64,000 nucleotides of DNA, taken from positions 156,238 to 220,237 of the IMG/VR virus record IMGVR_UViG_3300011934_000017; one strand, given 5' to 3'. The first letter of the stretch is position 1. Each line of letters opens with the position of its first letter. Position numbers and translations under genes: made by a program. Below the pieces are notes generated by a model that worked only from the letters and a program-made list of their open reading frames with translations, did not search any database and was not told where the DNA came from. Below, in pieces: positions 4,851 to 44,617 of the stretch.

Positions 4851-4935
4851 GGGGACCCTCCATAGGTATATAGCGCAAATTACTAAACGAAGGTCTGATA
4901 ATTTCAATTACATGCTAGAGTCTCAGGAGAATGAC

Positions 4936-6090
4936 ATGGCTAGAATACGCAGAGGTACGGGAGGCAAGCTCCGTAAAAATGCAAAGAACTTTACGCACAA
5001 ACAAGCGCAAGCACGTTTGCAAGAAACGGTAGCACCCTTTAACAAACAGGTAGATAACTCGCTACGAGTAAATGCTGTAGAGATTGATTATTACCAGACA
5101 CAAAACAAAATAGGCAGACCATGTACTTGCGACAAGATACAAATATATGATGAACAAAAGACGCGAGACGGTGGCAGCAATTCAAATCATATAGAACCAG
5201 TTGTACCTACCGTAGACGAAGACAGTAGCTCAAGATTAGATATTGAGCTTCAGGACGACAATCTGTTTGGTGATGGGCCTGCTGAAAAGCTGTACGGTGA
5301 AAACGTATATGATGTTAGTGGTTCCGACAATCTGAAAGACGACGATATTCCTGACGAAATATATCGAAACATGTTGGCAGGCGAAGGCGACGTAGCCATG
5401 TCTGAAACCTCCATGTTCGGTTCAAATGCTAACTGTGGAATATGCTATCGTGTAGGTTTCCAGCCGGGGTACAAGTCATACGGCAAACAGCGTACATTGT
5501 TGACCACGTGGGACATTAAAGACATAAGCAGTTATAATGTTGTCACGACCGAGACACCTAATAAGATGCGGCGTCAAGGCCCCAAAACAGACTACACGTT
5601 TGTTGAGTTCACCTTGTTCGTTCCGAAGTATTTCAAGTCTTGTATTTTCAGCATTCGAAACAACACACAGATTCTACAAGGTGAGCGGATTCGAGCGTTT
5701 AACCAACCGCTGACTTTGAAAACGTTGAAAGACAATGCAGGCAAAGAAATTGTGGTTCGAGTGGATGCGTTGGAGTTCACGCATATTGTTGTCGAGTTTG
5801 ATCTAGGTGTTCAAAAGACATATGCCAATCTAGGACCAGAAAGCCAAGCGCTTGACTATTCCAAGATGGATGCGCTTTCAAACTTTCCTTTAGTTCTTCC
5901 TCCTTCTATTCACGAGGTCAATACAGGTGATGTTATAGTCATCAAAGACCGAAAACTGGTACTAAAAATCATAGACCTGGAGAGAAAGATAACAGCAGAT
6001 AAGAGGCAATTAGAATGGACAGTTCAAACTCGACTAATCCAAAAAACAGAACCCTTGAGAGACATTGCGAAGGGCATGAAGATTCTGTAG
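4936..6090 (+). CDS. Putative virion structural protein with CxC...CxxC motif (possibly head closure/neck type)
   Basis: AGGAGA RBS before ATG 4936; PCTC and CGICYRVGFQPGY. The function is inference. Confidence 0.55.
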   Translation: MARIRRGTGGKLRKNAKNFTHKQAQARLQETVAPFNKQVDNSLRVNAVEIDYYQTQNKIGRPCTCDKIQIYDEQKTRDGGSNSNHIEPVVPTVDEDSSSRLDIELQDDNLFGDGPAEKLYGENVYDVSGSDNLKDDDIPDEIYRNMLAGEGDVAMSETSMFGSNANCGICYRVGFQPGYKSYGKQRTLLTTWDIKDISSYNVVTTETPNKMRRQGPKTDYTFVEFTLFVPKYFKSCIFSIRNNTQILQGERIRAFNQPLTLKTLKDNAGKEIVVRVDALEFTHIVVEFDLGVQKTYANLGPESQALDYSKMDALSNFPLVLPPSIHEVNTGDVIVIKDRKLVLKIIDLERKITADKRQLEWTVQTRLIQKTEPLRDIAKGMKIL

Positions 6091-7505
6091 GAAGAAAGAA
6101 TTACATTGTCACCGTAAAAAGAAATGTCGTCAAAGAAGACGTGCTGGATGAATTACAGCGCCCAGAATGCGGATGCGTCCATCGAAGCGTCGAAGTAACC
6201 GACTTCCAATCGTTGAGCAGAAGGAATTTCACAGTAGCTTTGACTGTGGAAGAGCGGGATATCCTGAGAGAAAGCGACAATGTGGTTGATGTTGTTTTGG
6301 AAGAAGGCTTCAATAGAATGAAGCCTGTGCTTGAAGAGCAACTGATTAATCCTGCTTTTGAGAATAGCGCTTCAAGCACCCACGACAACTGGGCTCTGGA
6401 TCATTGTGCGTTTCGAAACGGATACAAGTACATTTACTCGCACACCGGAAAGAACGTAGACATAATCTTCATTGACTCAGGTGTGGACCCTAATCACTCT
6501 GAGTTCGAACAGAACGGTGTATCCAGAGTCCGCGTTATTGAATGGGAAGCTGGACAGTTCAGCACTAAGCCAGATCAATACGTAGACACGGAGGGTCATG
6601 GGACTGGTGTGTCTAGCTGTGGTGTAGGCAAAAGACAAGGCTTCGCAAAAGACAGTGACATATATAGCATAAAGATTTTTGATAATGATGCCTACAGCCC
6701 GTTAAAAGCGTTGCAGCTTGCGCGTACTTGGCACAATCAAAAGACGAACGGTCGTCCTACCATAGTGAACAATAGCTGGGGATATTCAGCGGAGTATCCA
6801 CCTGGGCATCCTAAAGCAGGACAAAAGCATCCTGTTCAAGTAGCTGTGATAGATGCTGAAATCGAATCCATGATAGACGCGGGCATTATAGTAGTAAGCG
6901 CAGCAGGAAATGAAAATCACCACGTAGCCGCAGAAGGCACTGCCGAATACGATGATTTTTACTACACAGACAGCAGCGGTAACTACACCGAAATTATGGA
7001 GGATGCTGCATACTTTGATAGGAACAATCGATACACGCCGGGCGGTTCTGCCGAGACGATATGCGTTGGTTCAATAGGTGAGTTCTATCCTACTTCCAGA
7101 TTCATAAGGTCATGGTTTTCTAATTTTGGAAGTAGGGTAGACATATTTGCTCCAGGACGTGTGATTCAGTGTGCTCAGTCCTTAACAACAAACGATCTAA
7201 AGAAAACCAATGGTACTTCTTTTTCTTCCGGCATTCTGAGCGGTATAATTGCGCTTTGGTTAGAGATAAACCCGACTGCGAATCAAATGGATGTTAGAAA
7301 ATGGCTGAGTAGGCATGCCTTTTCAAGCGAGGTCGTAGGCAGTTTAGAAGGTGCAGAAAATCAAACAGCCAGAGTATTGTTCAACGGTGTCAGAGCAGCT
7401 AAAGACACTCCTCATACAATACTGTTGAAGCAAGGTAATCAATGGTATCCAGTACAACATATAACCAGCAATAAACGAGCCGTATATGGCAGGAGAATTT
7501 CATGA
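6015..7505 (+). CDS. Subtilisin-family (S8) serine protease with I9-like prodomain
   Basis: Triad motifs FIDSGV, EGHGTGV, NGTSFS; oxyanion AAGNE; NNSWG, FSNFGSRVDIFAPG. Start uncertain (76-nt overlap with the upstream gene). Confidence 0.9.
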   Translation: MDSSNSTNPKNRTLERHCEGHEDSVGRKNYIVTVKRNVVKEDVLDELQRPECGCVHRSVEVTDFQSLSRRNFTVALTVEERDILRESDNVVDVVLEEGFNRMKPVLEEQLINPAFENSASSTHDNWALDHCAFRNGYKYIYSHTGKNVDIIFIDSGVDPNHSEFEQNGVSRVRVIEWEAGQFSTKPDQYVDTEGHGTGVSSCGVGKRQGFAKDSDIYSIKIFDNDAYSPLKALQLARTWHNQKTNGRPTIVNNSWGYSAEYPPGHPKAGQKHPVQVAVIDAEIESMIDAGIIVVSAAGNENHHVAAEGTAEYDDFYYTDSSGNYTEIMEDAAYFDRNNRYTPGGSAETICVGSIGEFYPTSRFIRSWFSNFGSRVDIFAPGRVIQCAQSLTTNDLKKTNGTSFSSGILSGIIALWLEINPTANQMDVRKWLSRHAFSSEVVGSLEGAENQTARVLFNGVRAAKDTPHTILLKQGNQWYPVQHITSNKRAVYGRRIS

Positions 7506-8119: not shown

Positions 8120-8135
8120 ACCTACCGAAACCTCT

Positions 8136-8163
8136 AAAAAGGGCGGCAAATGCTGCCTTTTTT
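8136..8163 (+). terminator. Rho-independent terminator
   Basis: AAGGGCGGCA-AA-TGCTGCCTTT stem followed by T run. Confidence 0.8.
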
Positions 8164-9130
8164 CGTGTCTGAAGCGTGACGCTGAAACATCAAATGTAAC
8201 AGAGTGTTAACCATGCAAAAGCACTCTACAGGGCTGTTTGAAAGCATTGGGGGCGTCATCCATGCAAAACCAATGCTTTTGCATGTCTGTAAGCAAAATA
8301 CCTTGTTACAATTCGTTACAAAAAAGTTTTGTGTGGAAGAAATGCGTTTTTAGACCGTTTGGAGCCTCTGTCCTGTTAAAAAACGTCAAAATATCAACCT
8401 TGTTTTTTAGACGCCTTAAAATCAGGCTAAAAATCACTCATTTTTAACGATTTCCTCAAAACCAAAAAGTGTCAATACGCAGTATTGGCGCAGATTGCGT
8501 TGAGCAGCAAAGCGTGAAGAGCTAAGCGAGGCGCAGCCGAGCATTAGCGATGATGCTTGAGTAATGCCTCAGCAAACAAGAGACGCTAGGCGGCGCGAAC
8601 ACTTAGAGCCCGTCTCGTCCAGAAGCGTTGAGCGCAGCGAATAAGCGAAGGGGTTCCAAGCGAAGCGTTAAGCGTTCCAAGCGCTGCGAGGCAGCGCGAT
8701 AGCAACGAGCGTAGCGAGTTGCTTAAAAGAACCTATCCTACGCGATCCTACGACTGATTCATTTAAAGAACGTTAAGCAATTAAAAATTGCATTCTTTTG
8801 GATCATGTTAAAACAGGCCGAACTCTGTCTTTGCTAAGACCATAGCAGACCTTAAAACAAGGTGAATTAATAGGACGTGTGGAATTAAATGAGCCAGTCG
8901 TAGGACTGCGTAGTGTTGTATAATGTTAAAGGTCCAACTCGCTACGCTCGTCGTCCCTAACGCTGCTTCGCAGCGTTTCTCTAATCCTTTCCGCTTCGCG
9001 GTACCGCGGGCTAACGCCCGCTCTCGCTCACTTCGTTCGCTCACCTTAAAAAACCTAATTTGTCAGTTCAAAAATCAAAGTCTTTTCAAGACAAACTTTT
9101 TAAATGAAAAACTTTTGTTGCGCGCTTTAA
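8164..9130. other. Non-coding dyad-symmetric region; candidate replication origin
   Basis: Largest gene-free gap; 17-bp perfect IR 8705-8721/8935-8951, nested 15/17 IR 8738-8754/8897-8913, AT-rich core, strand-specific hairpins, flanking A/T tracts. Confidence 0.55.
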
Positions 9131-9131
9131 G

Positions 9132-9139
9132 TGTAAATA
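9132..9139 (+). promoter_or_regulatory. TGTAAATA promoter motif upstream of the modification operon
   Basis: Exact motif copy ending 34 nt before ATG 9173. Confidence 0.65.
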
Positions 9140-9172
9140 TTGAACAGATTATATGGAAAACCGGAGATTACG

Positions 9173-10648
9173 ATGGGAAAACAGTTACCCGAAGAGCTAA
9201 GGTATCAGCTTCTTGTTTTCGACTATAAGAAAGCTAACAAGGCACGCAAGCTCTGGAAAAAACGTAAAGGAGATAAGGATAAAGAAGCCCATAAAAAGTT
9301 TTGCTATGGATTAGGAGCAAAGCTAGACGTTTCTCCGAAAGTAGTTAGCTTCATCGTCAAAAACAATAAATGGGCAGATCAAAAGCCCGCAGAGCATGTA
9401 AAATCATTACCAACAGGCCTTCAAGAATACGATAAACCTTCTTTGAAGCCTGAAGCCTTAGTCAGAGGAAGAGAATTATACATATCTCCTAAAAACTGGC
9501 GCAGGCTCAACGAGCATTACACCAAAGGAAAAATAAAGAAAGCTATTGTTCGCGCTGTTAGAAAGCTAGATTTACCTGCACCTGTTCAACCTATAAGCCA
9601 AGAGCAAGCAGATGATAGCTTTCGAGCACTGAAAAAGTTGCGTTCTGACAGCATGATAAAACGTATGCCTACCTGCACACGGTGGGATTATAAATACGGT
9701 ATTTCCGACGTTGTTATTGACGCACCTCGAACAGGAAACGAATGCTCAAACTTTTATCATCAGGAGTCACGTTGGTGGTGCGACTATCAGAGTATTCCGT
9801 CACCGATGAAAGTATGGAATTCTGATCTTCACATGTATTCCATGATGAATGCTTTATGGACGTTGAAGTTTAAGAAGATTACAGGACCAGAGCTTCGCAC
9901 AGCTATAAGTGTCCGTAAATATGTGGCTAGTCAGTTTAAACCTTCTGCCGCCAAAGCGTTTTACGAGCTATTTGACTGCAAGCACGTTTACGATCCTTCC
10001 AGTGGCTGGGGAGACCGTCTAGCAGGCTTCATGGCAGCTAAATGCACCAAGTCCTATTGCTCTACGGATCCCAACAGCAGACTGTACGACGACTATGAAT
10101 TGCAGAAAAATCGGTACGGTGGAAAGAAAGAAATAAACATGTACTGTCACGGTAGTGAAATCAAAGGTGGTGTTCGCAAGATGTACGGACACAGAGTTGA
10201 TACTGTCTTTACTTCGCCTCCTTATTTCAATGCCGAACGCTACAGCGAAGACGAAGGCCAAAGCTTTAGGCAGTTTGATGAAATAAGTGCGTGGCGTGAA
10301 AATTTCCTGTTTCCTTCTTTGAAAAATGCGTGGAATGCTTTGACTTCAGAAGGTGAACGCGGTGGCATTCTAGCAATCAATATTTCGGACATATACAACT
10401 CTTCGGATAAAACTCGCGGTGAGATATGCGACCCTATGAACGATTACATATCTTCGCTGAAAGGTGCTCGATACATCGGTTGTATTGGTTTGCGTCTAGC
10501 TAAACGTCCTGAGAGCGGTGCACTTGAAGGTAAACAAGGTGCAAGTATCGAACCTATCTGGGTCTGGGCTAAAGGTGGCTCTTGGGAGCTAGACGATTAT
10601 ATAGATAACGGATTTAAGACTAAGAAAGTAAAAGGTCTTTGGGGATAA
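9173..10648 (+). CDS. SAM-dependent amino (N4-C/N6-A type) DNA methyltransferase
   Basis: Motif I YDPSSGWGDR and motif IV FTSPPYF; long basic N-terminal extension; GGAG RBS before ATG 9173. Confidence 0.85.
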   Translation: MGKQLPEELRYQLLVFDYKKANKARKLWKKRKGDKDKEAHKKFCYGLGAKLDVSPKVVSFIVKNNKWADQKPAEHVKSLPTGLQEYDKPSLKPEALVRGRELYISPKNWRRLNEHYTKGKIKKAIVRAVRKLDLPAPVQPISQEQADDSFRALKKLRSDSMIKRMPTCTRWDYKYGISDVVIDAPRTGNECSNFYHQESRWWCDYQSIPSPMKVWNSDLHMYSMMNALWTLKFKKITGPELRTAISVRKYVASQFKPSAAKAFYELFDCKHVYDPSSGWGDRLAGFMAAKCTKSYCSTDPNSRLYDDYELQKNRYGGKKEINMYCHGSEIKGGVRKMYGHRVDTVFTSPPYFNAERYSEDEGQSFRQFDEISAWRENFLFPSLKNAWNALTSEGERGGILAINISDIYNSSDKTRGEICDPMNDYISSLKGARYIGCIGLRLAKRPESGALEGKQGASIEPIWVWAKGGSWELDDYIDNGFKTKKVKGLWG

Positions 10649-10649
10649 T

Positions 10650-11360
10650 ATGGCACATATCATTGAAGCAAACAGTATCGACAGTCTTTGGTATCGTACT
10701 ATGAATACCTTACTGACTGAAGGCGATAAGATTAGCGGTATTCAAGAAATTCCTAATCTGATCTTGGTTCTTAAAAAGAATTTTCGATCCTCTGAGTTTT
10801 TCGATAAAGAGTTTCGTCGTATTTTTGGAGACGAACGAATAGACTTTGCATCTTCTGTAACGTTTGTTCCTCCGAAAGAAGGCATGGTAAGTCCTTCATA
10901 CGAACAGAATGAGCCCAAAGCTAAGTGGACGAAAACTTACTGGGGTCGTATGATCAGTTTTGACGGAAGTGTTAATCAGATTGAGGAAGCAATCAAAAAG
11001 CTTTCTAAAGGTAAGAATACCAAGATGATTTCTATAGGTATTTATGCGCCTTCTTCCGATCATCGCAAAGTCATGGGTGGTGTGCCTTGTATGACTGCTA
11101 TCGATATAAAGCCTAGAAATGGAAAGATTGATCTATCTGTTTTCATGAGGTCTATGCGATTCTCTAAGTCGGGTTATGGAGACGTTCATGCCTTGTGTGA
11201 ACTAGGTAAATATATCTGTGAGCGCTCTAACATGGAAATGAACAGCCTCACCATGTTTGCGACCTCTGGACACACTTTTTACTCTGGTGAAGAGTTTACA
11301 AACTGTAAAGCTCTTATGGAATCAATGAAAGAACGCAAAGCAGAGAAGGTAAGAATATGA
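10650..11360 (+). CDS. Atypical thymidylate-synthase-fold protein (dCMP-hydroxymethylase-like Asp)
   Basis: YWGR...NQ, PC147, RS167-168, D178 at the E. coli N177 position, H208; R170 replaces the conserved D169. Confidence 0.8.
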   Translation: MAHIIEANSIDSLWYRTMNTLLTEGDKISGIQEIPNLILVLKKNFRSSEFFDKEFRRIFGDERIDFASSVTFVPPKEGMVSPSYEQNEPKAKWTKTYWGRMISFDGSVNQIEEAIKKLSKGKNTKMISIGIYAPSSDHRKVMGGVPCMTAIDIKPRNGKIDLSVFMRSMRFSKSGYGDVHALCELGKYICERSNMEMNSLTMFATSGHTFYSGEEFTNCKALMESMKERKAEKVRI

Positions 11361-12172
11361 AGCTCAGCCTTAATAATCCAGTTGAAACCCATCGTATTGG
11401 CAAATACGAAGTCTTTGTCAAGCGTGATGATATGATGGGTGATAATAAAATTCTTCCACCTTGGGGAAAGATGGACGCCATTGATAGTATTCTTCAAAGA
11501 ATGGATCTTAGCGTACCTCTTATACAACTGAATGTCTTTGGTTCTTGGAGTGGTTGGGCACTCGCACGTCTCGCTAAAAAGTATGATTGCGAAGTACATG
11601 TGGTTCATCCTAAGACGAAGAAAATCACTGACGACTATATAGGTGTGATGGAAGAAGCAGGTGCTATCATTCATCCTATTCGACATAATATGATGCGCGT
11701 TTTGTACGCTCAGACGAACAACAGGGCGAAAGAAGAAGGTATGAGAATGCTGCCGTATGCATTCAACACACCGAAATATCTAAACGCTATGGCAAGACGT
11801 TTACGCGCTACTTTAGAAGAGCTGGGTCCCATAGATAACTTGGTGGTAAGCTCTGGTAGTGGTGTGACTGTTACGGGACTGTCTAAACCTTTTCTTGATC
11901 TAAATCCTAAAGGTCAAGTCTACACTGTTTGCGTTTCGTCCGAAAATTCGATTCGTAAAACGTTTAACAGTCGTGAAGTCAGCACTGATCCTGTTCACAT
12001 TATCAAGTCACCGTATGAGTTTGGTGATACGATGCCTAAAGTTGAAGTTCCTTTCTCTTGTAATCAGTTTTGGGATAAGAAAGCTTGGCATTGGTTGACG
12101 GAGAACAAGAGCATTCTTAAAGGTAAGCGTACACTGTTCTGGAATCTAGGTGGTGAGTATACATTTTTGTGA
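11357..12172 (+). CDS. PLP-dependent fold-type II enzyme (ACC deaminase/D-cysteine desulfhydrase-like)
   Basis: VKRDD, PPWGK (putative PLP Lys), SSGSGVT phosphate loop, LFWNLGG; ATGA overlap with the upstream gene. Confidence 0.85.
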   Translation: MKLSLNNPVETHRIGKYEVFVKRDDMMGDNKILPPWGKMDAIDSILQRMDLSVPLIQLNVFGSWSGWALARLAKKYDCEVHVVHPKTKKITDDYIGVMEEAGAIIHPIRHNMMRVLYAQTNNRAKEEGMRMLPYAFNTPKYLNAMARRLRATLEELGPIDNLVVSSGSGVTVTGLSKPFLDLNPKGQVYTVCVSSENSIRKTFNSREVSTDPVHIIKSPYEFGDTMPKVEVPFSCNQFWDKKAWHWLTENKSILKGKRTLFWNLGGEYTFL

Positions 12173-12183
12173 GGATTGAATAA

Positions 12184-13026
12184 ATGGGCAAGCCGAAAGT
12201 TAAAGAATGTTTGATACGTAACCTGGAAAGATATGACGGACCTTTTGCTGTTCTTCTGTCGGGTGGTGCAGACAGTCACGCTAATCTTTTCGCATTACTT
12301 GAGATGGGCGCAGACGTACACGTATATAGCTGCACCTTAGAAGACAGGGAAAGCAGGGATTTTATTTGTGCTCGCAGGACTGCTGAAATCTTTGATCTAC
12401 CTTTCACACCTGTTATTTTACCTACAGACCTCGACCAGCTCCTTGTAGATATTCGAGAGAACATGAGTCTTATCGGAACAAAAGGCAAGGTAGAGGTAGA
12501 AGCTTTATGGGCGTTTCGTAAAGCCGTTGATATTATAACAGAACCTAGTATCGTCAGCGGTCTGTCAGCAGGTATGTATTTTTGTTTGACCAAGAAAGGC
12601 AGCATACACTACGCACATACAGGAAGAATCGACGAATATCGTAGAGAGACATTTAAAAGAGCCTCTAATCCTAATAATCAAGGGGCCAAGATGAAACGAT
12701 ATTCGAAAAGCGTTGGAAAGAAGTGGATAAATCCTTGGATAACCCGAGGAATGCTAAAGACGTTCTTAGGAACTACATGGGAAGATGTAAATAAACCACG
12801 ACAAAAAGAAGCGATCCGCGCAGACTTTGAAAAATACTTTGCAAAAACCAAAGTGTTTAATCAACGAGACATGCACAAAGGTGATAGCGGTATGTCTGAG
12901 CTATTCGCTAAATTGTTGGAAGACCCTAAGGTAAATGTTAGGAATCATAAATCTGTTGTTGGTATCTACAATATGATACGAGCAGAAGAGCTGGCCAGAG
13001 TAAATAAAGGCCCTGGCTTGTTCTAG
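12184..13026 (+). CDS. Asparagine-synthetase-like PP-loop amide ligase without glutaminase domain
   Basis: LLSGGADS PP-loop, IVSGLSAGMYF, INPW, KEAIR, KGDSG; 280 aa with no N-terminal Ntn domain. Confidence 0.75.
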   Translation: MGKPKVKECLIRNLERYDGPFAVLLSGGADSHANLFALLEMGADVHVYSCTLEDRESRDFICARRTAEIFDLPFTPVILPTDLDQLLVDIRENMSLIGTKGKVEVEALWAFRKAVDIITEPSIVSGLSAGMYFCLTKKGSIHYAHTGRIDEYRRETFKRASNPNNQGAKMKRYSKSVGKKWINPWITRGMLKTFLGTTWEDVNKPRQKEAIRADFEKYFAKTKVFNQRDMHKGDSGMSELFAKLLEDPKVNVRNHKSVVGIYNMIRAEELARVNKGPGLF

Positions 13027-13038
13027 TCGGAGAATGCA

Positions 13039-13701
13039 ATGCTTACTTTCCAACATTTAGATAAACTCACCATAAACGAATTTTTTGAAAGCGACTTGTT
13101 TTTTGAGTTGCACTCTCTGTCTGGTATGAGCATATTTAGCGGTAGTACGGAAACAGTAAAAGAGAAATTGCTAGATTCTGTACACAACCAACAAGAAAAG
13201 GTTTCACACAACCTCGTATGTTCGAATGGAAAACCTGTTGGTTTCTTTTCTTTGAAGACGCACAGTACCTACTTTTACTACGACACCTTTACAGATACAG
13301 TAGAAGACTTAGGTAATGCGGTAGAGTTTTCTAGTTGGTTTGTTTCTAGTAGCTATAAAAATCTAGTTTCTCCTACCGCCGCTATAATGAGAAAAAGCTT
13401 AGAAATGGCAAGTGACATTGGACGCATTGCTGTGTTTGGTGTGCGAGCACAGTATTACGAAGACGGTACTCCAATGTTTCTTTCTGCGAATAGAGATTGT
13501 TGGAGTCACGAACCGCGACCAGACTACAATATATCTAATGGGCCTAAAAACTTGTCTGTGACGCATCCTTCTTTTCATCCTGATTCTTTTGGTATTTTAA
13601 AAGCTGCTCACCTGTTTGGCTTTAATATGTTTGGTTTAGATGCTTACGACGGGAGTCCTAAATATCGCAAGTTTCTTTCTTCAATGAAATCTGTTGAATG
13701 A
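13039..13701 (+). CDS. Putative GNAT-fold acyltransferase
   Basis: LVCSNGKPVGFFSL strands, EFSSWFVSSSYKN motif-A-like segment, AIMRKSLEMA helix; GGAGA RBS. Confidence 0.5.
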   Translation: MLTFQHLDKLTINEFFESDLFFELHSLSGMSIFSGSTETVKEKLLDSVHNQQEKVSHNLVCSNGKPVGFFSLKTHSTYFYYDTFTDTVEDLGNAVEFSSWFVSSSYKNLVSPTAAIMRKSLEMASDIGRIAVFGVRAQYYEDGTPMFLSANRDCWSHEPRPDYNISNGPKNLSVTHPSFHPDSFGILKAAHLFGFNMFGLDAYDGSPKYRKFLSSMKSVE

Positions 13702-13745
13702 GATTCTGCAATATCCACTATGTAATGGTTTGATGAGGATAAATA

Positions 13746-14726
13746 ATGTCGATTACCGTAGAAAAAGACGATTATATAATCGTTCGTTACCGCAACAAGT
13801 CCGTTCTTTGTTTTGTGTTGAATGGAAAAAGCTGTAGAGGCGTTATAGAAAAAACGCTTCATACCGATGATCCTGAGAATATCACTTACGAAAGTGAAAA
13901 CGTTCTCTGTAATCTGGGTCCCAACCCACAAAATGGCAAAATCTACGGCATTGATGTTACACCGTATCGAAGCACCATAGATACAAAGACGTTTGGCCCC
14001 ATTCATCTATTCCGTGACGTTCCTAAAAAGGAGCTTAAAGCGCTTCGTTCTGCAATGAAGACGGTGCACAAGAAATTTGAGAAAGAGGCGAGCACTGCCT
14101 TTCTACCTTTGTATCAAATGCACATTCTACCGAAGAAGGGCAAGTATGCAGGGTCATATCTAGCCAAGTCTAAAGGCAGTGAAGTATGGGACCAGATTAA
14201 ACTGCATCCCGACACATTCGTTGATCCTATCTATAACGAATACCTGATTGCCCACGAGTTTGCACACGGCCTCTGGTACCGCTGTGTGCCTATGGATATC
14301 CGAGCTAAGTGGATCAATCTATATCAAAAGCGTCGTAAGCTAAACTCTATTAATCAAAAGCATCTGGACGAGCTTTACCAAGAGCTTATGCGTTATGAAG
14401 GTGGTATTCGTGATTACATCAAAGAAGTAGCCGACGATGAAGAAAAACTGGTAATCAAGGAAGTGTTGAACTACTTCAAGCGTTACCAGAGTATGTCTTC
14501 AGATGATGTGGAGCTCTTGTTGTTACATGATAGTGGCAAGCTTGCTGATATGTGGCCGAGCCGTGCTCTACTATCAGAGACCAGTCCCGACATTTCCACC
14601 TATTCTATGGTCAAGGTAGAAGAATTTTTTGCAGAGGCTGTGGCTTATCATTTTACAGGAAGAACGTTACCTAAAGATGTTCAGAAAGGCATTTCTATCA
14701 CCTTCAAAAAGTGCAAACAAGCTTAA
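13746..14726 (+). CDS. Zincin-like metallopeptidase domain protein
   Basis: IAHEFAHGLW (HExxH) and distal EEFFAEAVA. Confidence 0.65.
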   Translation: MSITVEKDDYIIVRYRNKSVLCFVLNGKSCRGVIEKTLHTDDPENITYESENVLCNLGPNPQNGKIYGIDVTPYRSTIDTKTFGPIHLFRDVPKKELKALRSAMKTVHKKFEKEASTAFLPLYQMHILPKKGKYAGSYLAKSKGSEVWDQIKLHPDTFVDPIYNEYLIAHEFAHGLWYRCVPMDIRAKWINLYQKRRKLNSINQKHLDELYQELMRYEGGIRDYIKEVADDEEKLVIKEVLNYFKRYQSMSSDDVELLLLHDSGKLADMWPSRALLSETSPDISTYSMVKVEEFFAEAVAYHFTGRTLPKDVQKGISITFKKCKQA

Positions 14727-14733
14727 TTCTAGC

Positions 14734-14760
14734 AGGGAAGCTTTTTAGCTTCCCTTTTTT
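14734..14760 (+). terminator. Rho-independent terminator closing the 9173-14726 operon
   Basis: AGGGAAGCT-TTTT-AGCTTCCCT-TTTTT. Confidence 0.85.
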
Positions 14761-14815
14761 AGGTTCAAATAGTGTAAATATTACTCAATATAACGCTATA
14801 CTTAAGGCAATACTC

Positions 14816-15529
14816 ATGAACCTAACTAAAATCATGGAAAACAATTCAAGGCTGTTCTCTCACGTTATAATCCCTAGACGAAGCGCTCCTACAAAAATTC
14901 GTCCCATTTTACCTCTCAAGATTAAGTTTCTAACAAAACCTAATTCTAAGCAAATCCTTTATTCTGGTTTGTACTTTTGCATTCCAGATAATCTTCTGTT
15001 TTACGAAATGGACTTACTAGAAAAGGCAATTATAAGCAGGTTGCCTGACATTTCTCAACCTTTGAACATACCGTATAGTCTGGTTACGAAACTAGATCCG
15101 TCATTTTATGGATACATAAATGGATTTCACGTCGAAGACAATAAGGCTTATATAGAATCTGCGAATTGTCTTTTTGTTAATCCTGACTCACCTTTATTAC
15201 CTACGTCGCTCGAAGACCCTGCTTATGGTGTACTGCTTCCCCTTTATGAGGCGTCTGCTTGCTTATCTTATCTGTTAGCTTCCATATCCCTATATAGAGC
15301 TGGTGACTTTGATACTCTACCTACGATGCTAGAGAAGACTTGGAGTAAAGTAGAAAAAGCTTCAGGTGTAAATATGACTAAAGCATCTTTCATCGACGGT
15401 ATGTTTAGAATCGGTCCTGACTTATTTGGTAACTCTATAGAAGATGATTGTGTGGCTCCCGGACTTGCGCATCTTCTAGGTAGCTTTTTGTCTTTAGATA
15501 CTGACGTGTCGAAACATTTGGAGTGGTAA
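14816..15529 (+). CDS. Hypothetical protein
   Basis: ATG 14816 downstream of TGTAAATA (14773-14780). Confidence 0.7.
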   Translation: MNLTKIMENNSRLFSHVIIPRRSAPTKIRPILPLKIKFLTKPNSKQILYSGLYFCIPDNLLFYEMDLLEKAIISRLPDISQPLNIPYSLVTKLDPSFYGYINGFHVEDNKAYIESANCLFVNPDSPLLPTSLEDPAYGVLLPLYEASACLSYLLASISLYRAGDFDTLPTMLEKTWSKVEKASGVNMTKASFIDGMFRIGPDLFGNSIEDDCVAPGLAHLLGSFLSLDTDVSKHLEW

Positions 15530-27505: not shown

Positions 27506-28840
27506 ATGATTATTCATCACGATAACACTGTCCTCGCTGCTGCCAATAAGGATCCGCGCAATTATGGTTGGTACGAACTCACGGGCGCAAAAGCTACCTT
27601 CGAACATGCTCACAAGACACATGAGCTAATTCTATCTCGCGGTGAGAAATATGGCCTTAAGGAGTACCGAGGTAAAGTATTTCTAGTAGACGGCAGTGAT
27701 TTGAGTATTCAATTCAGTCTTACACTGGATGAAGCTACTAAGCTTGTTAAGAAGTCTAAGCCTTGGTCAGGAAAGATCAGTCGCTACAAAGTAAATGCTG
27801 GCGCTCCTAAGCTGTCTGGACCTAAAGCTTCTGGACCTAAAACGATTGTTACAACGCCTAGTTCTGCTCCCAGCGATTCGCTAAAAGGCTTAGACATTCT
27901 AAAAGCATTAGGCAAAAGTAAACCAGAAAGTGACAAAGAAAACGGTATTTCGTTTAAGCGCGTTGTCGCTTCTGGTACTCCATCTACTGTAATGCGTAAG
28001 CTCACTAAGATGGGTTTGGCTAAAGCGCAAAAACATAATGAGGAGCCTTTTGTTGAGTGCGATGACGGTGTTCTGCTCGTCAAACGTCACGAGTTGAAAG
28101 AATCGCTTATCATGTTCTTCAAGCCTACGACATGGAAAAAGTATAAGAACCTAGAAGCACAGCCTGTTAAGACTCCGAAGACGCCTAAGACTCCTAAAGA
28201 GCCCGTGTCCGCTCGTCCTCCAAAGCCACCTAAGACTACAACTACTAATTCAGGTCAAAAGGTACAGCACACACCTCGTACGGAAGCTGTCAAACTGATG
28301 GATTCTGTTAACGGAGCACCTCTAAGTGCAACGTCTATGCCTGTAGAGCTAAAAGACCCTGAAGTTTATGCAGCGTCCTTGTACGGTCGTGAAGTTAGCA
28401 CAGGGCGTCGAACATCTCCTAGATCCGTGACTACTGTAGGTTATGCTCACATCAAAGGCAAATTCTGTCTTGTCGGAGTCTCCACCAGTATGAAAGGTGT
28501 CAATATTGTAGGCTTTCCCCTCACTGATGTAGAGAAACATGCTACAAAACGACTTCAGGATCCTCAGCTTTCTTATAAAGATTTCTTGTATATGAGGAAT
28601 TTAGCTTCAAATGAAATAAACAACATTCATGAGCGCAGAGCCAACACCAAAGAGGAATCCCACGAGAAGTTTGAACGTATGAATCCGCAACCGGGTATGC
28701 GAGCCACTATTAAGTTTTCCAACGGAACGCAGTCTACGACTATCGTAGATGTACGACGTTCTGACGCTACTATTGGAATTAAGGGAAGTGGCAAGAAGCT
28801 TCGTTGGATTCCAATGAGCATGGTAAAGTTTGTTGAATAA
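27506..28840 (+). CDS. Low-complexity virion-like protein, paralog family A member 1
   Basis: N-terminal DP-x-Y-x-W-Y...L-S-x-GEK[YF]G[LI]K domain shared with 28856 and 42686; PK repeats. Confidence 0.75.
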   Translation: MIIHHDNTVLAAANKDPRNYGWYELTGAKATFEHAHKTHELILSRGEKYGLKEYRGKVFLVDGSDLSIQFSLTLDEATKLVKKSKPWSGKISRYKVNAGAPKLSGPKASGPKTIVTTPSSAPSDSLKGLDILKALGKSKPESDKENGISFKRVVASGTPSTVMRKLTKMGLAKAQKHNEEPFVECDDGVLLVKRHELKESLIMFFKPTTWKKYKNLEAQPVKTPKTPKTPKEPVSARPPKPPKTTTTNSGQKVQHTPRTEAVKLMDSVNGAPLSATSMPVELKDPEVYAASLYGREVSTGRRTSPRSVTTVGYAHIKGKFCLVGVSTSMKGVNIVGFPLTDVEKHATKRLQDPQLSYKDFLYMRNLASNEINNIHERRANTKEESHEKFERMNPQPGMRATIKFSNGTQSTTIVDVRRSDATIGIKGSGKKLRWIPMSMVKFVE

Positions 28841-42685: not shown

Positions 42686-44617
42686 ATGACTATAAAATTT
42701 TCTCCGCAAACGTCTTTGTCAGCAGGACGCAAAAGCGATCCCACCAAATTCAAATGGTTCGAGGTCTCTAAAGGTAAAATTCTTTTAGATAATCACCATA
42801 AAGAGTTCGAAGTCGAGCTTAAAAAAGGTGAGAAATTCGGTATCAAAAAAGGTCGGGGAAAATTCATTCTTGTCGATGAAGACGACCTTTCTCTGACCTT
42901 CTCTCTGACTTTGGATGACGTTTCTGCTATTCTGTCGAAGGCTAAAAGCTTTTCTGGTATGATAGATGGTAAGAAAGTGATGCCTGGTAGTCCTAAAGAC
43001 TTTGCAGGCGCGAAGTCTGCACCGTCTGCTTCAAGACGTGTGCCTCCGGAAATGTCCCTGACATACTACAGAGCCTTAGAAAATGTTTTTGGGGTTCTAT
43101 GGCGACCTTTTGCAGGCTACATAAATAAAGGTGAAGGTAAGGGTAAGCCTGCAAAAGGAATGCTTAACAGAATGCTTAAAAGCGCCTACAAGAGTGCTCA
43201 GGAGATTAAGTCTTACGGAGGCAAACTTCCTAAATACCAACATTCTTACCTGGAAAAGTATTACGACTTCTACAATAACACGTTAGCAGAAGTTCTCAAA
43301 AAGCCTGTTCCCGACATTTTGGAGATTAGCGCGCCAGCACGAAGTACCTATAAATTCACTGTTAAAGAATACCGTGAAGATATCAAGTATTTCGCAGACA
43401 TTTTTCTGCTGGATGAAGAGAAATCAACAAAACAAACCCAGAAAATTTTAGCGCAGAAAAAGAACGATGCCGCTCATGGTGTAAAAATGCTTAAATTCCT
43501 GGGAGAGAAACTGCCTTCCACTAAAAAGCATCAGCGTGTTATCGAGGAAGTCCTTGAACCTGCTACGAAAAGTCGTGCTTCGAAAACGCCATCTAATACA
43601 ACTAAGCCACATCCCGGTTTAGAAGTAAAGCAAGGTGCTACACCCAAGCAAGATCGTTCAGGTGAAGCAGCCAAGCGCATCACAGATAAGAACGTCGTTA
43701 CTGCTTTGAAGCGTATGGGTGTAGAGCTTGAGAAGGATCCTTCCGATAAGGCATATCGCGGTGAGGTGACTCCGAAGCTTACTCGTGAGATTAAAAGCGC
43801 TTTTGAAAATGCAGGTTGGGATACCAGCTATCGTAAAGGCGGTTCTAACACTAGAAAGCGAGGGTCGTTTACCGTTCTTTATATGGAGCTGCCTGGCGGA
43901 AAGCGTCATGTTACCATAGCGACTACAGGACGTTCTAAAGGTCGCGTAACAGTAATGCCTCCTACTACCAAAGCTGCGCCTAAAGCTGCTGCGCCTAAAG
44001 CTGCTGCGCCTAAAGCTGCTCCTGCTAAAAAATCGGCTTCTAGTGTTACAAACTACAATGACTATGTAGCTCTTCTGGAACGTAATAGTGACGAACTGGA
44101 TCAAAACGGTATTGATCCTGCGGAAGTAGCACCAGACTTTTTGCGTAATATTAAAGGCTTGCGTTCCTTTATGAATAAAAAGTTTGGTTTAAAGGGCGAA
44201 GATGCTGCTAGAGCCTTAGCCGACGATATCTATATGGGCAGACCTGCTAATCTGCGCCGGGACGAAGGTGTTTCCGACGCGATAGATAATTACGAAGAGG
44301 AAATAGAAGCCACATTCATTCAGGACGTCGCCCGTAACCTGAGACACATGAAAAAGCACAGTAAAGCGATAACCGAAATAAAGCAGAAAGAGATAATAGA
44401 AGGGATGGCGTCGTTCACCTGTAAGTTCGAAGGAACGCCCTTCCAGATAGATGTTGTCTTCCAAGACGTTGTGAAAGGTAAGATATCTGCTCGTGTGTCT
44501 ATCTCCAGTTCCACAATGCGCGGTAGTGTGAGCAAGCGGGCGTTAGGCGCAAAAGCAGAACCTGAAGCTTTGGTTAAGCGCATTGTGAACTTCTTTGAGA
44601 CAGGTGGCAAGTGGTAG
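42686..44617 (+). CDS. Multidomain virion-like protein, paralog family A member 3
   Basis: DPTKFKWFE...LKKGEKFGIKK N-terminal domain; AAPK repeats. Confidence 0.75.
   Translation: MTIKFSPQTSLSAGRKSDPTKFKWFEVSKGKILLDNHHKEFEVELKKGEKFGIKKGRGKFILVDEDDLSLTFSLTLDDVSAILSKAKSFSGMIDGKKVMPGSPKDFAGAKSAPSASRRVPPEMSLTYYRALENVFGVLWRPFAGYINKGEGKGKPAKGMLNRMLKSAYKSAQEIKSYGGKLPKYQHSYLEKYYDFYNNTLAEVLKKPVPDILEISAPARSTYKFTVKEYREDIKYFADIFLLDEEKSTKQTQKILAQKKNDAAHGVKMLKFLGEKLPSTKKHQRVIEEVLEPATKSRASKTPSNTTKPHPGLEVKQGATPKQDRSGEAAKRITDKNVVTALKRMGVELEKDPSDKAYRGEVTPKLTREIKSAFENAGWDTSYRKGGSNTRKRGSFTVLYMELPGGKRHVTIATTGRSKGRVTVMPPTTKAAPKAAAPKAAAPKAAPAKKSASSVTNYNDYVALLERNSDELDQNGIDPAEVAPDFLRNIKGLRSFMNKKFGLKGEDAARALADDIYMGRPANLRRDEGVSDAIDNYEEEIEATFIQDVARNLRHMKKHSKAITEIKQKEIIEGMASFTCKFEGTPFQIDVVFQDVVKGKISARVSISSSTMRGSVSKRALGAKAEPEALVKRIVNFFETGGKW
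43976..44020 (+). repeat. 3 x 15-nt exact tandem repeat (GCGCCTAAAGCTGCT, APKAA)
   Basis: Read directly from the sequence. Confidence 0.9.

Follow-up and report, generated by a model that had tools for sequence, protein, structure and literature searches.

Two described routes to hypermodified phage DNA are closest to the locus analysed here. In the 5-carboxymethylcytosine-glycine (5cxmC) pathway of Synechococcus phage S-B43, formed by CmoA (a Cx-SAM synthase), CmoX (a C5 carboxymethyltransferase) and CmoY, the latter is an ATP-dependent ligase that amidates 5-carboxymethylcytosine in DNA (Yang et al., Nat Commun 2025, PMC12783734). In the thymidine hypermodification pathways of phages M6, ViI and PaMx11 the first step is a thymidylate synthase (TS)-fold enzyme, and M6 gp52 is a PLP enzyme which decarboxylates amino-acid-base conjugates in DNA (Lee et al., PNAS 2018 and NAR 2021, PMC8989533). 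Cytosine-specific TS homologues comprise the dCMP hydroxymethylase T4 gp42, the CMP hydroxymethylase MilA, and the flavin-dependent 5-hydroxy-dCMP synthases RB69 gp48 and HY126 AfhB (PMC13326640). We analysed a 64,000 nt stretch (the window) of a 220-kb jumbo-phage contig (IMG/VR record IMGVR_UViG_3300011934_000017, positions 156,238 to 220,237), in which an operon joins a cytosine-type TS-like enzyme to homologues of both CmoY and M6 gp52. The same gene set recurs in about 90 uncultured viral contigs but was found in no cultured phage, and no description of it was found in the literature, so it probably builds a DNA base modification which has not yet been described. The features of the locus are as follows.

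9132..9139 (+): TGTAAATA, promoter-like motif in front of the operon
9173..10648 (+): SPPY protein with a predicted class I methyltransferase fold (MTL), 491 aa from the ATG at 9173, which has a GGAG 6 nt upstream; the automatically called ORF of 502 aa starts at the TTG at 9140
10650..11360 (+): TS-fold enzyme of cytosine type with an unusual cofactor pocket, 236 aa, the core gene of the module
11357..12172 (+): fold-type II PLP enzyme of the M6 gp52 family, 271 aa
12184..13026 (+): single-domain PP-loop amide ligase of the CmoY family, 280 aa
13039..13701 (+): GNAT-derived protein lacking the acetyl-CoA motif A, 220 aa, a labile tailoring slot
13746..14726 (+): HExxH zinc metallopeptidase (zincin), 326 aa, a backbone gene of PaBG-like phages
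14734..14760 (+): intrinsic terminator

The original prediction, made from the sequence alone, described one unit of six genes encoding an SPPY amino-methyltransferase, a TS-fold protein, a fold-II PLP enzyme, an asparagine-synthetase-like PP-loop protein, a GNAT-like protein and a zincin, and this observation was confirmed. All six genes are on the + strand, and are separated by gaps or overlaps of 1, -4, 11, 12 and 44 nt, exactly as predicted. The terminator consists of the stem AGGGAAGCT/AGCTTCCCT (14734-14755), with 9 pairs and a 4-nt loop, followed by TTTTTT. The TGTAAATA motif occurs 15 times in the window against 2.75 expected (0 of 100 shuffles reached 15), mostly intergenic, in gene orientation and just upstream of genes, and is found both at 9132 and again at 14773, right after the terminator, making a single transcription unit plausible.

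We next examined the individual proteins using profile searches and structure prediction. The MTL protein has an SPPY motif preceded by a DPSSGWGDR motif I, and scores 18.4 bits with PF01555, below the cut-off of 26.7 bits, although many members of its family do carry PF01555. This family has more than 1280 members with a core of about 370 aa, in which D274-G278-W-G (motif I) and S348-P-P-Y are invariant, fitting the FxGxG-like motif I and the (S/D/N)PPY motif IV of the N6/N4 amino DNA methyltransferases, and its viral look-alikes are automatically named N4-C DNA methylases. The AlphaFold model (pLDDT 90.6) has a class I methyltransferase fold without a close solved relative, with the best solved neighbours being tRNA/rRNA and small-molecule methylases at a TMq of 0.30 or less.

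The 236-aa protein was assigned to the TS fold by TIGR03283 (2.6e-21), and its profile hits MilA and AfhB. The structural model (pLDDT 91) gave AfhB and MilA as best PDB matches (9iqc/9iqu and MilA, TMq 0.65-0.71). Using the diagnostic residues from PMC13326640, the catalytic Cys146 equivalent (C147) is kept and Asn177 is replaced by Asp (D178) in 87 of 87 relatives, aligning with MilA and marking the family as cytosine type, and the phosphate-binding Arg-Ser is also kept. In contrast, Asp169, which binds the pterin in folate-dependent enzymes, is Arg in 77 and Ala in 10 of the relatives, and no member has the Asn diagnostic of the flavin-dependent enzymes, even though AfhB is the best structural match. 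Position 143 is Gly, Ser or Lys, rather than Asp/Glu or Leu, and the family has its own invariant Lys173 and Tyr176.

The PLP protein matches PALP (5.8e-11) and phrog_7093 (3e-25), and aligns over its full length with MP1412_11, the gp52 orthologue. Its K38 is invariant, which we equate with the K36 proposed for gp52 (PMC8989533), and a C-terminal PFxCNxFWDxKxWxWL motif is shared. Among the 50,697 cultured-phage records searched, the only relatives of this PLP family are the gp52 orthologues of M6-like phages and neighbours annotated alike. The PP-loop protein matches Asn_synthase (3e-5) and phrog_26038 (5e-53), contains an SGGADS motif, and is 27% identical to CmoY of S-B43 (SpCmoY) over 244 aa (E 2e-25), with an SGGxDS motif in the full-length alignment, and 37-40% identical to the PaBG and Erwinia phage ligases that sit beside CmoA, with CmoX too in PaBG. 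It has only the synthetase domain, and thus lacks the N-terminal class II glutaminase domain with Cys1 of glutamine-dependent asparagine synthetase (AsnB), whereas most distant relatives do have the glutaminase domain, their called ORFs mostly starting with MCGI. In the ligase tree it falls in one clade with SpCmoY (100/100 support), and this short-ligase clade mixes ligases from TS-type and CmoA/CmoX-type loci, which argues for a similar substrate, a carboxylate on cytosine.

Two of the six genes did not fit the module as originally predicted. The 220-aa protein has no Pfam hit, even at E 1, but is 28.7% identical (E 4e-13) to proteins in two related loci (L011 and L009) which score 1e-8 and 8e-11 with PF00583, respectively. 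In a three-sequence alignment, a 6-residue deletion removes their HQKQGI loop, corresponding to the acetyl-CoA-binding motif A (Q/R-x-x-G-x-G/A), and in the closest relative (L008) unrelated ORFs of 182 aa and 85 aa take the place of this gene. The zincin (phrog_17197, 1e-95) is 42% identical to PaBG_182, and in PaBG and in L009/L011 it sits between homologues of PaBG_181 and PaBG_183, whichever modification cassette is present, while it is absent from the other TS-type loci. Although plausibly co-transcribed, it is therefore not a conserved module member. Pseudomonas phage PaBG carries its CmoX, CmoA and CmoY homologues at the syntenic site, before the same peptidase, clamp loader and SbcC, so that two cytosine-modifying cassettes (the one described here by inference) share one ligase family; neither this synteny nor the link with the CmoA/CmoX/CmoY system was noted in the original prediction.

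[quoted passage not shown] Of 25 dereplicated related loci from very different phage backbones, all 25 have a PLP or radical-SAM gene next to the TS-like gene, while 23 have the ligase and 22 have the MTL gene, the latter often in 2-6 copies. The genes are on the same strand, usually in the order TS-ligase-PLP, and the clusters sit among replication genes such as polymerase, helicase and RNR. Three of the families are firmly linked by fusions, as TS::radical-SAM (P0177) and radical-SAM::SPPY-methyltransferase (locus L043), whereas a TS::AsnB fusion (locus L088) lacks the catalytic Cys1 and may be a deletion artefact. The family is essentially viral, with one clear hit in 185,579 species genomes. 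While the original prediction suggested that related phages may carry the same genes, the TS/PLP set was found only in metagenomic viral contigs.

We also searched for components of the described pathways. HMMs built from the CmoA and CmoX proteins of S-B43, PaBG, Erwinia and Staphylococcus phages found nothing among the ORFs of the window, which covers only part of the contig, or in the 87 TS-type loci. Searches with phmmer using the MP1412 kinase, its presumed aGPT-Pplase and its SPL-like radical-SAM enzyme likewise found nothing in the window, and no such family recurs in related loci. No CmoA, CmoX, 5-hmdU DNA kinase, aGPT-Pplase or radical-SAM homologue was thus found among the window ORFs, and the set matches no described pathway, in agreement with the original prediction, which had seen no match to the pathways known to it.

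Taken together, we favour, with moderate confidence, a phage DNA hypermodification module aimed at C5 of cytosine, built from four conserved enzyme families and ending in an amide-bearing, amino-acid-derived side chain. The original interpretation, that the genes install an amino-acid-derived, amidated, acylated and/or methylated group on cytosine as an anti-restriction or anti-CRISPR shield, is therefore partly supported: the conserved module, the homology of two members to enzymes shown to act on modified bases in phage DNA, and the cytosine type of the TS-fold protein come from our analysis, whereas the chemistry and any anti-restriction role are inferred from sequence alone, as every carrier is an uncultured contig. 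In this model, the first step is supported by sequence and fold: the TS-fold enzyme would bind a deoxycytidine mononucleotide and activate C5 through its conserved cysteine, and with Arg or Ala at position 169 the group it installs is probably neither plain hydroxymethyl nor hydroxyl. The second step is inferred, with the substituent carrying, or being extended to carry, a carboxylate and an alpha-amino group, and the gp52-type PLP enzyme working on that amino-acid part, either by decarboxylation, by analogy with gp52, or by forming the bond through a beta-replacement typical of this fold. In some relatives a class-B-like radical-SAM enzyme replaces or joins the PLP enzyme. However, no enzyme that would obviously install a carboxylate or an amino acid was identified (no kinase, AADT, CmoA or CmoX), and the first two steps need either new TS chemistry or an unusual PLP reaction; furthermore, a decarboxylase like gp52 would remove the kind of carboxylate needed by the ligase, unless there are two carboxylates or a side-chain-linked amino acid. 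By homology to CmoY and AsnB, the PP-loop enzyme would then adenylate a carboxylate on the modified base and turn it into an amide, which in most relatives, with a glutamine-hydrolysing AsnB type, implies a carboxamide, while the short CmoY type of this phage may add an amine or an amino acid. Finally, it is inferred that the MTL protein N-methylates either the side-chain amine or a base amino group, although it could also be an ordinary DNA methylase, while the GNAT remnant probably no longer acetylates. The finished bulky, amide-bearing cytosine would shield the phage DNA from host nucleases.

Of the alternative explanations, the one surviving best, albeit unlikely, is that the pathway makes a free modified cytidine nucleotide or nucleoside that is never built into DNA, such as an inhibitor, a signal decoy or an antibiotic-like compound, as in peptidyl-nucleoside pathways beginning with MilA. 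MilA is among the best sequence and structure matches of the TS-like protein, TS-fold enzymes act on mononucleotides, the TS::radical-SAM fusion suggests that later steps could also act on the nucleotide, and amidotransferases and PLP enzymes are common in nucleoside-antibiotic clusters. On the other hand, the nearest characterised relatives of the ligase and of the PLP enzyme both act on DNA, the clusters sit among replication genes and are accompanied by DNA-methylase-like genes, and the syntenic PaBG cassette is a set of homologues of characterised 5cxmC DNA-modification genes.

It is somewhat less likely still that the genes have separate, ordinary jobs and merely lie together, as a short archaeal-type thymidylate synthase or dCMP hydroxymethylase, an asparagine synthetase-type metabolic gene, an amino-acid enzyme and a plain N4-C or N6-A DNA methylase. 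The long ligases do exceed the NCBIfam cut-off for true asparagine synthase (292 against 267 bits), the MTL family is widespread and occurs without the TS-like gene in Vibrio, Bacteroides and Staphylococcus phages, and phage genes are always tightly packed. This is countered by the adjacency of TS, ligase and PLP (or radical SAM) in 23-25 of the 25 dereplicated loci, the fusions between the families, the narrow distribution of PLP relatives among cultured phages, and the replacement of the folate-binding Asp in every TS-like member. Modification of host or phage tRNA or rRNA is very unlikely, for although the structural neighbours of MTL include tRNA and rRNA methylases such as TrmN and RsmD-like enzymes, and CmoA-type chemistry originated in tRNA modification (PMC12783734), TS-fold enzymes are not known to act on polynucleotides or to feed RNA, CmoY and gp52 act on DNA, and no tRNA genes lie in the window.

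When compared with the CmoA/CmoX/CmoY system, the ligase is a full-length CmoY homologue with the same single PP-loop domain, occupies the same genomic slot in PaBG-like phages, and the target base is inferred to be cytosine C5, but CmoA and CmoX (which has a C5 methyltransferase fold and an SPPC motif) are replaced by a TS-fold enzyme, a PLP enzyme and an SPPY methyltransferase-fold protein, and the handle is probably made on the nucleotide before replication rather than on DNA. As with the M6, ViI and PaMx11 pathways, there is a TS-fold first step, a PLP enzyme of the gp52/gp226 family, radical-SAM and acetyltransferase options and a combinatorial cluster design, but the TS-like enzyme is cytosine type and not a dUMP hydroxymethylase, there is no 5-hmdU DNA kinase and no aGPT-Pplase/amino-acid:DNA transferase, the radical-SAM enzymes of related loci are class-B-like and not the SPL-like gp53, and a PP-loop ligase is a core member. 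The cytosine-specific TS homologues share the fold, the catalytic Cys, the Asp at the Asn177 position and the phosphate-binding Arg-Ser, but differ at positions 169 and 143. Finally, by analogy only, the enzyme logic resembles that of diphthamide biosynthesis, where an amino-acid-like side chain is installed by a radical-SAM enzyme, N-methylated by a class I methyltransferase, and its carboxylate amidated by a PP-loop ATPase, although the substrate there is a protein histidine, and it serves here only as a model for what such a combination could achieve.

The predicted operon lies in the last 64 kb of a 220-kb IMG/VR viral contig (IMGVR_UViG_3300011934_000017), and consists of six ORFs on the + strand, separated by 1, -4, 11, 12 and 44 nt:

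9140/9173-10648 (+), methyltransferase-like protein (MTL), 491/502 aa
10650-11360 (+), TS-fold protein, 236 aa
11357-12172 (+), PLP protein, 271 aa
12184-13026 (+), PP-loop protein, 280 aa
13039-13701 (+), GNAT-like protein, 220 aa
13746-14726 (+), HExxH zincin, 326 aa

The unit is closed by a 9-bp stem at 14734-14755 followed by a T-run. The sequence TGTAAATA occurs 15 times in the window against 2.75 expected (about five-fold over-representation, with none of 100 shuffles reaching 15), mostly in intergenic DNA just upstream of genes and facing the downstream gene, with sites at for example 1943, 1958(-), 1972, 9132, 14773, 20151, 33577, 44623 and 44883. It is likely to be a promoter element of this phage, possibly read by a phage-encoded polymerase as in other jumbo phages. 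One copy is located at 9132 and the next at 14773, directly after the terminator, and the transcription unit described in the original prediction is therefore well supported on sequence evidence. The ORF called automatically at 14711-15529 (272 aa, GTG start) overlaps the terminator, but its real start is probably the ATG at 14817, which follows the TGTAAATA at 14773 and gives a protein of 237 aa, close to the 236-aa homologue in L008, the viral locus most closely related to this one. Immediately upstream of the operon is a 1-kb gene-free stretch (8120-9130) with a long imperfect palindrome, containing nested inverted repeats at 8705-8721/8935-8951 (17 nt, 100%) and 8738-8766/8885-8913 (29 nt, 86%). 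Folded as RNA it forms a single hairpin of about 420 nt (approximately 8627-9045, z = -9.0 against shuffles), while an Rfam search of this region gave no match. The small ORFs inside it (8923-9228 and 8808-9044(-)) are probably not genes, and the region could be an origin, a cruciform or a structured RNA. Further away, a subtilase (Peptidase_S8, 6e-27, 6015-7505) is encoded upstream of the operon and two proteins carry the KMPT-N domain (27506-28840 and 42686-44617), but none of these seems related to the module. There was no near-identical DNA among 50,697 cultured phage records.

We next examined the individual proteins. The MTL protein has an invariant motif I (DxxxGWG), followed about 75 residues later by SPPY. 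This copy scores 18.4 bits with PF01555, below the threshold of 26.7 bits, although many of its more than 1280 relatives are flagged with this domain. A direct sequence search of the 502-aa protein against PDB gave nothing, and a profile search gave only weak generic methylase hits, including non-significant CmoB matches on which we do not rely. The structural model (pLDDT 90.6) is a class I methyltransferase with a helical N-terminal extension, but a structure search against PDB was uninformative beyond this, as the solved neighbours are generic (TrmN, COMT; TMq 0.30 or less), whereas viral look-alikes are automatically named N4-cytosine methylases. The TS fold of the 236-aa protein is supported by TIGR03283 (2.6e-21) and by a model with pLDDT 91, and its best solved matches are the phage HY126 dCMP hydroxylase AfhB and the CMP hydroxymethylase MilA. 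The PLP protein matches PALP (5.8e-11) and phrog_7093 (3e-25), while the PP-loop protein matches Asn_synthase and phrog_26038 (5e-53) and has an SGGADS motif. The 220-aa protein has no family hit, but is homologous (E 4e-13) to proteins in relatives that carry PF00583, with a 6-residue deletion removing their acetyl-CoA loop. In L008 (88% TS identity) unrelated 182-aa and 85-aa ORFs replace this GNAT-like gene (L008:4183-5015 compared with 13039-13701 in the window), and the slot between the ligase and the zincin turns over quickly. The 326-aa zincin matches phrog_17197 (1e-95).

Two of these proteins are linked to enzymes which modify phage DNA. The PP-loop protein is a full-length homologue of SpCmoY (27% identical over 244 aa, E 2e-25), the ATP-dependent ligase shown to join glycine to 5-carboxymethylcytosine in DNA (PMC12783734). 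It is also 37-40% identical to ligases of PaBG and of Erwinia jumbo phages, and about 36% identical to that of a 90-kb Staphylococcus phage, which sit beside homologues of CmoA, and of CmoX too in PaBG and the Staphylococcus phage. The PLP protein aligns end to end with MP1412_11, the orthologue of M6 gp52, and shares with it a C-terminal motif and an invariant lysine (K38 here, taken to be equivalent to the K36 proposed for gp52). gp52 decarboxylates C-alpha-glycinylthymidine in DNA (PMC8989533).

The comparison was then extended to gene order. PaBG has, in order, a ParB-like nuclease, CmoX, CmoA, a hypothetical gene, CmoY, gene 181, zincin 182, gene 183, DUF2829, clamp loader and SbcC, whereas the window has MTL, TS-like, PLP, CmoY-like, GNAT-like, zincin, a hypothetical gene, clamp loader (53% identical) and an SbcC-like gene (38%). 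In the closer relatives (viral loci L009-L011 and L016) the order is TS, PLP, MTL, a gene-181 homologue, zincin, ligase, GNAT, a gene-183 homologue and clamp loader. The zincin therefore belongs to the conserved backbone, with the modification genes inserted around it, and two different cassettes share one ligase family at this locus. A role of the zincin as a tailoring enzyme was rejected, since it travels with PaBG_181/183-type backbone genes whichever cassette is present, and is missing from all loci which are not PaBG-like. The original prediction of a cytosine hypermodification operon is partly supported, with the zincin that it had listed among the encoded proteins falling outside the module.

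To assess how widespread the module is, we identified 48 database relatives of the TS-like protein, and a scan of IMG/VR with their alignment returned 80 loci; HMMs were built for each family and all loci were scanned. Among 25 loci dereplicated at 90% TS identity and with at least 3 kb of downstream sequence, 25 have a PLP or radical-SAM gene within 6 kb, 23 have the ligase and 22 have MTL. The usual order is TS, ligase, PLP with one to six MTL copies on the flanks, and in viral contigs L032, L035, L038, L075, L085 and L090 up to four to six tandem MTL paralogues flank the TS-ligase-PLP core, which suggests several sequence specificities or several methylation steps. Beyond these families, the only recurrent neighbours which we could identify are replication genes. 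In L012, a 154-kb contig with a minimal TS-PLP-ligase cluster, a 586-aa protein with a weak Cas12f/TnpB-like nuclease domain is located directly downstream (4886-6646). The radical-SAM partners were considered as M6 gp53-like isomerases, but this was rejected, as they show no similarity to the MP1412 enzyme and look like class-B or ArsL-like enzymes, albeit only at generic scores. Most ligases are about 500 aa with a class II glutaminase domain, nearly all of the called ORFs begin with MCGI, and one sampled member exceeds the NCBI asparagine synthase B cut-off. The short CmoY-like form occurs in the lineage of this phage and in several others, and a maximum-likelihood tree places all short ligases in a single clade with 100/100 support, in which members from TS and CmoA/CmoX contexts, including SpCmoY, are intermixed.

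Fusions tie the families together: a TS-like::radical-SAM protein of 676 aa (database protein P0177), and a radical-SAM::SPPY-methylase of 801 aa (L043:4486-6891). A third, in which the TS-like protein is joined to an AsnB (L088:7995-10127), was downgraded to weak evidence, since the join removes the first ~13 residues including the catalytic Cys1 of the glutaminase. The clade is small and viral, with 16 clusters at E 1e-30 or better among 1.84 billion representatives, one clear hit in 185,579 species genomes and none in the cultured phages searched. The only cultured-phage relatives of the PLP family in that collection are the gp52 orthologues of M6-like phages and neighbours annotated alike.

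The active site of the TS-like proteins was compared at the diagnostic positions set out in PMC13326640. All 87 members keep the Cys146 equivalent and Arg166-Ser167, and all have Asp at position 177, which marks cytosine specificity. Position 169 is Arg in 77 members and Ala in 10, and is never Asp (as in folate-dependent methylases and hydroxymethylases) or Asn (as in flavin-dependent 5-hydroxy-dCMP synthases). Position 143 is Gly, Ser or Lys, while Lys173 and Tyr176 are family-specific invariants. This points to a cofactor or co-substrate different from those of the characterised classes.

With regard to mechanism, homology supports a cytidine-nucleotide C5-activating enzyme, an ATP-dependent enzyme that converts a carboxylate to an amide, a PLP enzyme of a family that works on alpha-amino-acid groups attached to a pyrimidine, and a SAM-dependent amino-methylase-like protein, whereas it is an inference that together these build an amide-bearing, amino-acid-derived substituent on C5 of cytosine. 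As neither a kinase plus AADT nor CmoA plus CmoX was identified in the sequences examined to account for the carboxylate or amino acid, we consider three options between which the sequence does not decide: the TS-like enzyme itself may install a carboxyl-bearing group, the PLP enzyme, whose fold typically does beta-replacement, may attach a serine-derived alanyl unit to a TS-made handle, or the MTL may transfer a non-methyl group from SAM or a SAM analogue. A more far-reaching possibility, which we consider unlikely but not excluded, is that the TS-fold enzyme performs a reaction new to its superfamily, neither folate-dependent one-carbon transfer nor flavin-dependent hydroxylation. It could for example carboxylate C5 directly, or form a C-C bond with an amino-acid-derived electrophile, placing a carboxyl or amino-acid handle on dCMP. 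With the PLP or radical-SAM enzyme, the amidotransferase and the N-methyltransferase-like proteins, this would yield a diphthamide-like amidated (and perhaps N-methylated) amino-acid side chain on cytosine, and would represent a widespread but so far unseen DNA base in uncultured phages, many of them large. The alternative readings are a free nucleotide or nucleoside product and unrelated housekeeping roles, both made less likely by the conserved adjacency, the fusions and the DNA-acting homologues. An RNA target is made less likely by the same evidence.

Phage DNA hypermodifications decide which restriction, CRISPR and other nuclease defences can touch a phage, and have also supplied tools for sequencing and DNA chemistry. 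The module recurs in about 90 viral contigs from diverse backbones and in no cultured phage searched, which would explain why such a base has not been seen, and literature searches on cytosine hypermodification, on a TS homologue with asparagine synthetase, on candidate base names and on aGPT-Pplase with PP-loop found no description of this cluster. It gives a short list of three to five genes, expression of which would reveal a new nucleoside and possibly a new TS-family reaction.

Finally, we compared the module with known systems. Known pyrimidine routes start from 5-hydroxymethyl, 5-hydroxy or 5-carboxymethyl handles, whereas this module combines a TS-fold enzyme carrying a new active-site signature with the amide ligase of one known pathway and the PLP enzyme of another, without the handle-making enzymes of either pathway in the sequences examined. 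It does not fulfil the criteria for the thymidine pathways or for the CmoA/CmoX system, and its TS-like protein does not fulfil those for the folate-dependent or the flavin-dependent class of cytosine-specific TS homologues, while the enzyme set resembles diphthamide synthesis in logic only. We regard it as a probable form of phage pyrimidine hypermodification distinct from these pathways, and the comparison with PaBG also shows that PaBG-like jumbo phages swap whole cytosine-modification cassettes at one locus while keeping the ligase.
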